Source: Macrostomum lignano
Lineage: Eukaryota
NCBI GenBank assembly: GCA_002269645.1
Contig: NIVC01000309.1
Span: 186,001-250,000 of the forward strand
Direction of reading: 5' to 3'
DNA: 64,000 nucleotides
Of the stretch, positions 191-838 are shown in pieces. A program made the position numbers and the translations under genes. The notes under the pieces are model-generated. The model was not told where the DNA came from. It did not search any database and saw only the letters and a list, made by a program, of their open reading frames with translations. Position 1 is the stretch's first letter; the number at the start of each line of letters is the position of its first letter.

Positions 191-838
191 GACGGCGACA
201 CTCCGGTCGCGCTCGCCCTGAAGTGGGGAATGCGCGACACAGTTCGCAAACTGCTGAACAGCGGCGCCACTCTGGACGGCCTGGACGATGCGTCGCTAAA
301 AAAGTACGCTAAGCGCGGCTTCCTGCCGTCTCAAGAAGCCGCTTCGCCAACTCGACAGTCGGCTGCACCGTCGGCTGGCGGAAGAAAAGGCGGCGGCAAT
401 GTTAGACAGCAGCAGCAGCAGCGGCATCATTATCAAGGTGCTGGCGGCGGTTATTCAATGGGCGATTCGTCCACTCAGCGACGGTGGCGCGAATTGACGT
501 CGAAATTTGCCGATGCCGAAGTCGGCAGCGGCGGCGGTGCTGATGATAGCCGGTCGGCGGCCTTCACTGCGGTAGCTCGCTGCGTTCGCCGCCTGTTGGC
601 CGACTGTCGCACCGAGGAGCGACTGGAAGCTCGAGCTGCAACGCTTGCCTCCGCGCTGCGCTCAGCTGGCCCAGATTTGGCCACGGCCGGAGATCTGGCC
701 GAATTGCTGGAGATGCTGGCCTTCGATTGCGGCTTCCCAGTATCTGGCTCGCTGGCCGATTGCCTGGCCGGACTGCGACTTCGGTGTCGTCGAATAAGAG
801 AAGGTCCAGGCGCCTGGGCCGTGCGCTTGATGCGTACG
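191..838 (+). CDS. SMG1: SMG1 exon 1 (in window): ankyrin-like repeat, low-complexity linker, start of SMG1 HEAT region
   Basis: Acceptor ttcacaatAG at 189-190; open frame [26 protein letters not shown]...; donor acg|GTGCGT at 839, phase 0 matching the next exon. Confidence 0.8.

Follow-up and report, generated by a model that had tools for sequence, protein, structure and literature searches.

A candidate ankyrin–SMG1 fusion kinase in Macrostomum lignano, predicted from an N-terminal exon and its paralogous locus

Introduction

SMG1 licenses nonsense-mediated mRNA decay (NMD) by phosphorylating UPF1, and all PI3K-related kinases described to date are, to our knowledge, built of HEAT/FAT repeats and a kinase; we know of no member of this group (ATM, ATR, DNA-PKcs, mTOR, TRRAP, SMG1) with ankyrin repeats. 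The SMG1 gene of Macrostomum lignano raises the question of whether this rule has an exception. The sequence analysed here, hereafter referred to as the window, is a stretch of 64,000 nucleotides comprising bases 186001-250000 of contig NIVC01000309.1, of which about 186 kb lie upstream, and it begins within an intron shortly ahead of an exon whose first codons resemble an ankyrin repeat. A first-pass annotation of the window had offered two readings of this resemblance, namely that exons further upstream equip the NMD kinase with an ankyrin array, or that there is read-through from an ankyrin gene into SMG1. If SMG1 had an ankyrin module dedicated to docking, the PI3K-related kinases would gain a new architecture, one that points to a lineage-specific partner or regulation.

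Results and Discussion

The SMG1 gene of the window

The gene to which the exon in question belongs is a full member of the SMG1 family, with every defining domain present (Table 1). It possesses the SMG1-specific N-terminal HEAT domain, an FRB domain located N-terminally of the PI3K/PI4K-type catalytic domain, and a FATC domain at the C-terminal end of the protein, which terminates in ...MYEGWTAWV. Its closest homologues are SMG1 proteins (47-61% identity), and amphioxus SMG1 aligns along the gene in a tblastn comparison. In the curated model of 23 exons, the sequence from 191 to the stop codon forms a single open frame of 3686 residues, or of 3673 residues when translation is started at Met230. 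The splice junction at 15839 (not 15854) was set by the spacing relative to human SMG1, while the junction at 19868 (not 19903) was adopted once 191-bp direct repeats had been found there.

These repeats, which are 97.9% identical, span window 19874-21948 within the SMG1 intron 19869-22126, and the ∼1.7 kb between them harbours a minus-strand gag-like ORF with a zinc knuckle and a weak match to Retrotrans_gag. The segment is an LTR-like insert, and because it also contains open plus-strand frames, it misled the first, dynamic-programming gene model, which was dropped on account of too many small exons and of exons placed within the insert. The tandem-repeat search (TRF) showed the introns of the gene to be rich in minisatellites: nearly each of them contains one, specific to that intron, with units of 4-144 bp and arrays of up to 2.8 kb (for example, 1049-1217, 1993-2299, 4037-4606, 8932-10511, 10832-12818 and 23219-26019). 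Several of these otherwise unrelated minisatellites have the core TGTACA...CCCACCTCAC in common.

The exon at 191-838 and its upstream edge

The body of the intron ahead of the exon at 191-838 is a 21-bp minisatellite (Table 1). As the first-pass annotation had noticed, this minisatellite (1-160), a branch-like CTGAT (164-168) and an AG acceptor (189-190) precede position 191, the A of CTGAT lying 23 nt upstream of the AG. The end of the intron, CACAATAG, finishes with an in-frame TAG stop codon at 188-190, hence the reading frame opens exactly at 191, the proposed acceptor being the AG of the same triplet. From there the frame was correctly described as running without a stop into SMG1 HEAT sequence: translation proceeds through 838 and the frame stays open to 1084. 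The exon ends at the donor GTGCGT at 839, and the splice junction that connects 838 to 1230 is in phase 0. The last ankyrin repeat and the first SMG1 HEAT helices are therefore found in one exon and in one frame.

The segment 467-838 is matched by three predicted M. lignano SMG1 N-termini (P0121-P0123). The AF2 model of the window exon alone is a weak one (mean pLDDT 56), with two ankyrin-like helices that pair (residues 5-11 and 15-23, pLDDT 69-80), a third helix at residues 33-41 that corresponds to the cap, a stretch of pLDDT <50 over residues 49-92, which represent the linker, and helices over residues 93-215.

Table 1. Coordinates of the SMG1 gene, of its first exon in the window and of the predicted upstream exons in the paralogous locus L002.
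Sequence	Feature	Position	Strand	Evidence or remarks
Window	SMG1 gene	191-33869	+	M. lignano contig NIVC01000309.1, bases 186001-250000
Window	21-bp minisatellite, unit TACTGTTAGACAGTTATTAGA, 7.6 copies visible	1-160	+	TRF; array cut by window edge
Window	Intron 3' end, branch-like CTGAT and acceptor AATAG	161-190	+	Sequence; 29/30 bases identical to paralog
Window	Ankyrin repeat R3, 33 residues, third canonical repeat of the predicted N-terminal ANK domain	191-289	+	Pfam, PDB, codon usage, AF2
Window	Half repeat / C-terminal capping helix	290-334	+	HMMER alignment; AF2 helix, residues 33-41
Window	Low-complexity S/A/G/Q-rich linker, predicted disordered, contains Met458	335-466	+	Translation; AF2
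Window	First helical (HEAT-like) part of SMG1 N-terminus	467-838	+	AF2 helices; M. lignano homologue matches
Window	Rest of SMG1 gene, 22 exons	1230-33869	+	Gene model, Pfam, tblastn
Window	SMG1 domain (PF15785)	exon 4680-5158		Pfam, 26.8 bits
Window	SMG1 domain (PF15785)	exon 8266-8865		Pfam, 111.4 bits
Window	FRB_dom	16476-16877		Pfam, 30.5 bits (cut-off 24.7)
Window	PI3_PI4_kinase	17393-17782		Pfam, 27.1 bits
Window	PI3_PI4_kinase	18152-18829		Pfam, 111.7 bits
Window	FATC	33774-33866		Pfam, 56.6 bits; last codon ends 33866
Window	Stop codon	33867-33869		
L002	Exon A, 59 residues, starts with ATG, includes ...ERWFKAIDCARMSLVKEAYPAIDNVDV...	11392-11568		Donor GTAAGT
L002	Exon B, 34 aa, HKDATALHLASYIGHKDIVRFLISSKADPNASTS	18103-18204		Canonical ankyrin repeat
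L002	Exon C, 33 aa, LGYRPIHFAASEGHVTTVDILLNAGAEVSPVTA	18303-18401		Canonical ankyrin repeat
L002	Exon D, homologue of window 191-838	19244-19888		

Strength of the ankyrin match

Comparison with the Pfam ankyrin families (PF00023, Ank; PF12796, Ank_2) places the window repeat, when taken alone, under the curated Ank cut-off of 21.1 bits, the scores being 13.7 bits for a peptide of 217 aa, 15.9 bits for 48 aa and 16.8 bits for 30 aa (E = 0.009-0.086). A peptide begun at Met230 yields no Pfam Ank match, which indicates that the ankyrin signal is carried by the 13 codons at 191-229. In a PDB sequence search, the best 60 of 267 matches were all ankyrin-repeat or DARPin proteins; the top score for a single repeat was only 14.4 bits, and the high summed scores reflect many near-identical repeats being matched. 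HMMER pairs the residues KYAKRGFL behind the repeat with the opening helix of the succeeding DARPin repeat. The codon usage of 191-289 is exon-like, amounting to 0.50 bits/codon as compared with a mean of 0.31 (sd 0.16) for exons and of −0.36 (sd 0.27) for introns.

Upstream exons in a paralogous locus

The sequence missing ahead of the window edge has a counterpart in a paralogous locus, L002 (NIVC01002758.1:64542-84880), which was found via a COQ2-like part leading to GenBank PAA55415.1 (BOX15_Mlig022101g1). Window 3-1208 is 93.7% identical to L002 19056-20234, and the 21-bp minisatellite recurs there as a 700-bp array (18513-19213) between exons C and D. Exons A to D (Table 1) are bounded by GT/AG sites; all of their boundaries share phase 0 and the same position within the repeat. 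Exon A resembles an N-terminal cap; exon C has an alternative donor at 18383, the use of which would remove 6 residues. At the homologue of position 191 the join of ...GAEVSPVTA to DGDTP... keeps the exact 33-residue periodicity. The intron A-B, 6.5 kb in length, consists nearly entirely of a 24-bp (×185) and a 34-bp (×54) minisatellite.

The two copies are closely similar around the acceptor. In the last 30 nt of the intron before exon D the TAG acceptor is kept, and exon D itself is 98.4% identical between the window and L002. Out of the 10 substitutions, 8 are at third codon positions (binomial P ∼0.003 by our own arithmetic), the only changes in the protein are V/I and G/S, and a 3-nt indel in the linker leaves the frame intact. 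This third-position bias shows purifying selection acting on the shared frame. The ankyrin repeat of the window differs from that of the paralog by 1 residue.

The repeat claimed for position 191, which is sub-threshold alone, becomes unmistakable when the HMMER search proposed earlier is applied to the spliced product of the paralog. Exons A-D score 97.3 bits with Ank_2 (E 8e-28) and 66.7 bits with Ank, the latter in 3 stretches, far above threshold. Without exon D, exons A-C give 49.7 bits with Ank_2, so that the repeat of exon D weighs roughly the same as its two predecessors combined. PDB alignments to ankyrin-1/2 run unbroken over exons B-C-D with a per-stretch i-E of 1e-15. An array in the usual sense, that is, at least 2-3 repeats with a 33-residue period and caps, is accordingly found in the paralog, and the window displays its last repeat only. 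The first of the two proposals, an ankyrin array contributed to SMG1 by exons further upstream, is thereby supported for L002, where the spliced model joins exons A-C to exon D in phase 0 and the annotated coding sequence begins at exon A.

This genome presents exons of 80-100 nt separated by kilobases of minisatellite, and for that reason N-terminal domains are easily missed or mis-joined; one must also bear in mind that a window edge can halve a domain. The ATG of exon A opens a frame of 2232 codons through the minisatellites (L002 11356-18051, with FPDPKVTS repeated), the 24-bp unit being a multiple of three, so that the frame passes through that array. Repeat ORFs of this kind could give rise to mis-called giant proteins or to translation from unspliced RNA. 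The gene upstream of ANK-SMG1 in L002 carries no annotation beyond a 112-aa C-terminal COQ2/UbiA fragment (10001-10339, BOX15_Mlig022101g1). Its orientation is the same, and the ∼1 kb between its end and exon A includes a 46-bp minisatellite; together with ANK-SMG1 it may form an operon-like unit, or it may be a truncated COQ2 copy.

Annotation and predicted proteins

The GenBank annotation of this assembly (Mlig_3_7, NIVC) is based on a genome-guided transcriptome that made use of evidence for trans-splicing and for poly(A) (PMC5730564). Comparison of start and length shows that the coding sequence annotated in L002 begins with the exon A ATG at 11392 (record position 75933), comprises 3801 residues and continues beyond the end of the locus; the coordinates of the annotation table are those of coding sequences, as its other rows show. 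A coding sequence of this start and length agrees with one fused frame rather than with two genes. The fusion is modelled at 3686 + 126 (exons A-C) = 3812 residues, within 0.3% of 3801, a comparison that mixes two paralogs and in which length does not tell A+B+C+D apart from A+B+D.

With the HEAT sequence of the SMG1 N-terminus from Met458 onwards as the query, an exhaustive HMMER search retrieved three M. lignano proteins, UniProt A0A1I8JNN9, A0A1I8FCC4 (named “ANK_REP_REGION domain-containing protein”) and A0A1I8FLF8. These predictions are noisy, frame-shifted and partly chimeric with COQ2, and ankyrin sequence of exon B or C precedes the SMG1 N-terminus in them, as exemplified by ...HKDATALHLASYIGHKDI directly ahead of the window exon and by QHKDAT...YIGHKDIVRFLISSKADPNASTS.... 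Prediction P0122 begins with a COQ2/UbiA-like part followed by the SMG1 N-terminus; it is of the window type at the single diagnostic site (GSGGGADD vs GSGGSADD), and it also carries exon B. The possibility that P0123 represents a divergent paralog with a canonical “GHVTTVDILLNAGA” was ruled out, since this sequence is exon C in a shifted frame. A word-index homology search with exons 1 and 2 returned no match, though the three M. lignano proteins sit in the same collection; for queries rich in low-complexity sequence, no match in such a search does not mean absence. The ANK-SMG1 fusion is already present in GenBank and UniProt in the form of automatic, uncurated predictions, and has gone unremarked: none of these entries is named as an SMG1 with an ankyrin domain, nor is the fusion described in the literature searched.

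The acceptor at 191 and alternative explanations

Taken together, the most probable explanation, to which we assign a probability of about 0.8 on sequence grounds, is that one M. lignano SMG1 copy has its fourth coding exon at window 191-838 and would give rise to an ANK-SMG1 fusion, the upstream exons being transferred from the paralog L002. The point at which this reading is most open to challenge is the acceptor. The remaining 14 acceptors in the gene model comprise 13 CAG and one AAG, whereas 191 is preceded by AATAG with a weak pyrimidine tract, and a position weight matrix trained on these 14 sites scores it at −9.0, below 95% of decoy AGs. Genome-wide, the CAG motif is found in ∼60% of M. 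lignano cis acceptors (PMC8629364), so non-CAG acceptors are not rare.

An acceptor so unlike the other cis acceptors of the gene might be used by the spliced leader (SL) instead of, or besides, exon C. Translation would then begin at the SL AUG, Met230 or Met458, the product would be an SMG1 without a working ankyrin domain, and the upstream exons would belong mainly to a precursor or a minor isoform. The M. lignano SL, CGGTCTCTTACTGCGAAGACTCAATTTATTGCATG, ends in ATG (PMC8629364), and when it is joined at 191 this ATG is in frame (M-DGDTP...); a start at Met230 would also leave an N-terminal tail similar in length to those of other SMG1 proteins. However, the SL acceptor motif is [T/C]TNCAG (PMC8629364), and AATAG mismatches it, so that trans-splicing at 191, which the first-pass annotation had regarded as decisive against a fusion, finds no backing in the acceptor. 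A TTGCAG that does fit the motif lies 25 nt before the exon A ATG in L002, a cis donor that favours cis-splicing is available at exon C, ∼840 nt upstream of the homologue of 191, and the annotated coding sequence of the paralog begins at exon A. Moreover, the 13 codons ahead of Met230 show the ankyrin signature along with exon-like codon usage, and the purifying selection on the frame spans 191-457. Trans-splicing at 191 is consequently regarded as unlikely. A combination of both modes is conceivable, with the 191 acceptor acting as a switch by which one gene produces two forms, ANK-SMG1 through cis-splicing and SMG1 without a working ankyrin domain through SL trans-splicing; we consider such a switch rather improbable. 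SL trans-splicing is enriched in stem cells, and if the switch were real, the ANK form would be directed towards a partner specific to the lineage, for instance in stem cells.

The other reading offered by the first-pass annotation, an ankyrin gene running into SMG1, could also have arisen artificially, if annotation or assembly had merged a separate small ankyrin gene with an SMG1 that in reality has no ankyrin repeats. Multi-gene transcriptional units are frequent in this genome (PMC5730564), and P0122, in which a COQ2-like gene is merged with the SMG1 N-terminus, demonstrates that merging happens at this locus. A stand-alone ankyrin gene would nevertheless need a stop codon, and the spliced model contains none before that of SMG1, its frame being continuous from exon A and the other ankyrin exons to FATC. 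Since the third repeat and the HEAT helices share an exon and a frame, since all junctions are in phase 0 with an exact 33-residue periodicity, and since the third-position bias points to a shared frame under selection, read-through is disfavoured and a chimera appears very improbable. It is harder still to believe that the 33 residues are a coincidental or decayed resemblance with no array before them in the window copy. Such a view could draw on the single repeat scoring under the Pfam threshold, and on the fact that the array is known from the paralog while the window copy's own exons lie before position 1. Against it stand the canonical repeats directly upstream in the paralog and the near doubling of the Ank_2 score by exon D, as well as the near identity of the exon between copies, with mostly synonymous changes, and the presence of exon B in P0122, which is of the window type at one diagnostic site.

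Comparison with known SMG1 proteins and other kinases

The statement that characterised SMG1 proteins lack ankyrin repeats holds for the set examined: among 20 animal SMG1 orthologues, including those of amphioxus, Limulus, a butterfly, a wasp, a cricket, a bed bug and an amphipod, none matched Pfam Ank at E <= 0.01, while 19 of the 20 matched the Pfam SMG1 domain. The literature searched describes no ankyrin-bearing SMG1 or other PI3K-related kinase. The nearest N-terminus from outside Macrostomum (P0124, contig L003) is preceded by 356 nt that lack ankyrin coding sequence, on a contig too short to be informative. Planarian SMG-1 restrains stem-cell proliferation after injury, and ankyrin is not mentioned in the paper concerned (PMC3315482).

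Canonical SMG1 proteins (human SMG1, C. elegans SMG-1, planarian Smed-SMG-1) share with the M. lignano protein the HEAT arch, the FRB and kinase domains, the long insertion and FATC. The latter, in contrast, would add a domain of three ankyrin repeats, ∼160 residues with caps, before the disordered stretch; in human SMG1, a disordered stretch likewise precedes the first HEAT helices. Ankyrin arrays occur together with a kinase or pseudokinase in one polypeptide in ILK, ANKK1, TNNI3K, DAPK1 and LRRK2, where they serve protein docking. These enzymes, however, have the eukaryotic protein-kinase fold and are not PI3K-related, and their homology to the M. lignano protein is limited to the generic repeat.

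Predicted architecture of the fusion

According to the preferred reading, that of an ANK-SMG1 fusion, three short phase-0 exons would precede the window, the first supplying the start codon and the N-terminal cap and each of the following two one ankyrin repeat. The exon at 191-838 would then contribute the third repeat and the capping helix, a disordered linker of ∼45 residues and the HEAT helices. The mRNA probably starts at the TTGCAG SL acceptor before exon A, downstream of the COQ2-like gene and in the same orientation. The predicted product of ∼3800 residues would consist of a three-repeat ANK module, a flexible linker, the SMG1 HEAT arch, FRB, the PI3K-like kinase domain and FATC. By analogy with ankyrin arrays in general, the module may function in protein docking, as a protein-binding domain tethered to the N-terminus of the HEAT arch that could recruit a partner to the NMD kinase, be it a substrate, a regulator or a localisation factor. 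As a regenerating model animal amenable to transgenesis, M. lignano allows the ANK module to be removed or tagged and its partners to be isolated by pull-down.

Other elements in the window

Beyond the SMG1 gene, the window contains two Ty3/gypsy LTR retrotransposons. The element at 44118-47671 has 203-nt LTRs that are 100% identical and an RT/RNaseH/integrase ORF at 44488-47319 (+), and that at 54032-58647 has 203-nt LTRs that are 99% identical and a 1362-aa gag-protease-RT-RNaseH-integrase ORF at 54284-58369 (−); the near-identical LTRs suggest that both inserted recently. An intronless cytochrome P450 gene (49792-51372, minus strand, 526 aa), which scores 235 bits with Pfam p450, has a GenBank annotation and is the sole gene called within window 39792-61372; its ORF at 49795-51372, on record in NIVC01000309.1 (GCA_002269645.1), places the window at 186001-250000 in the same orientation. 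An ORF of 167 aa (38464-38967, minus strand) with a PANTS-like domain (PF11326, 40.6 bits) lies 4.6 kb downstream of SMG1 on the opposite strand, and no annotated product with exactly this sequence is on record. Finally, an AT-rich stretch is delimited by 300-nt direct repeats (41393-41692 and 42965-43264) that are 99% identical and 1572 bp apart; the ORFs between them have no Pfam match, and the region 41393-43264 may be another small LTR-type element.
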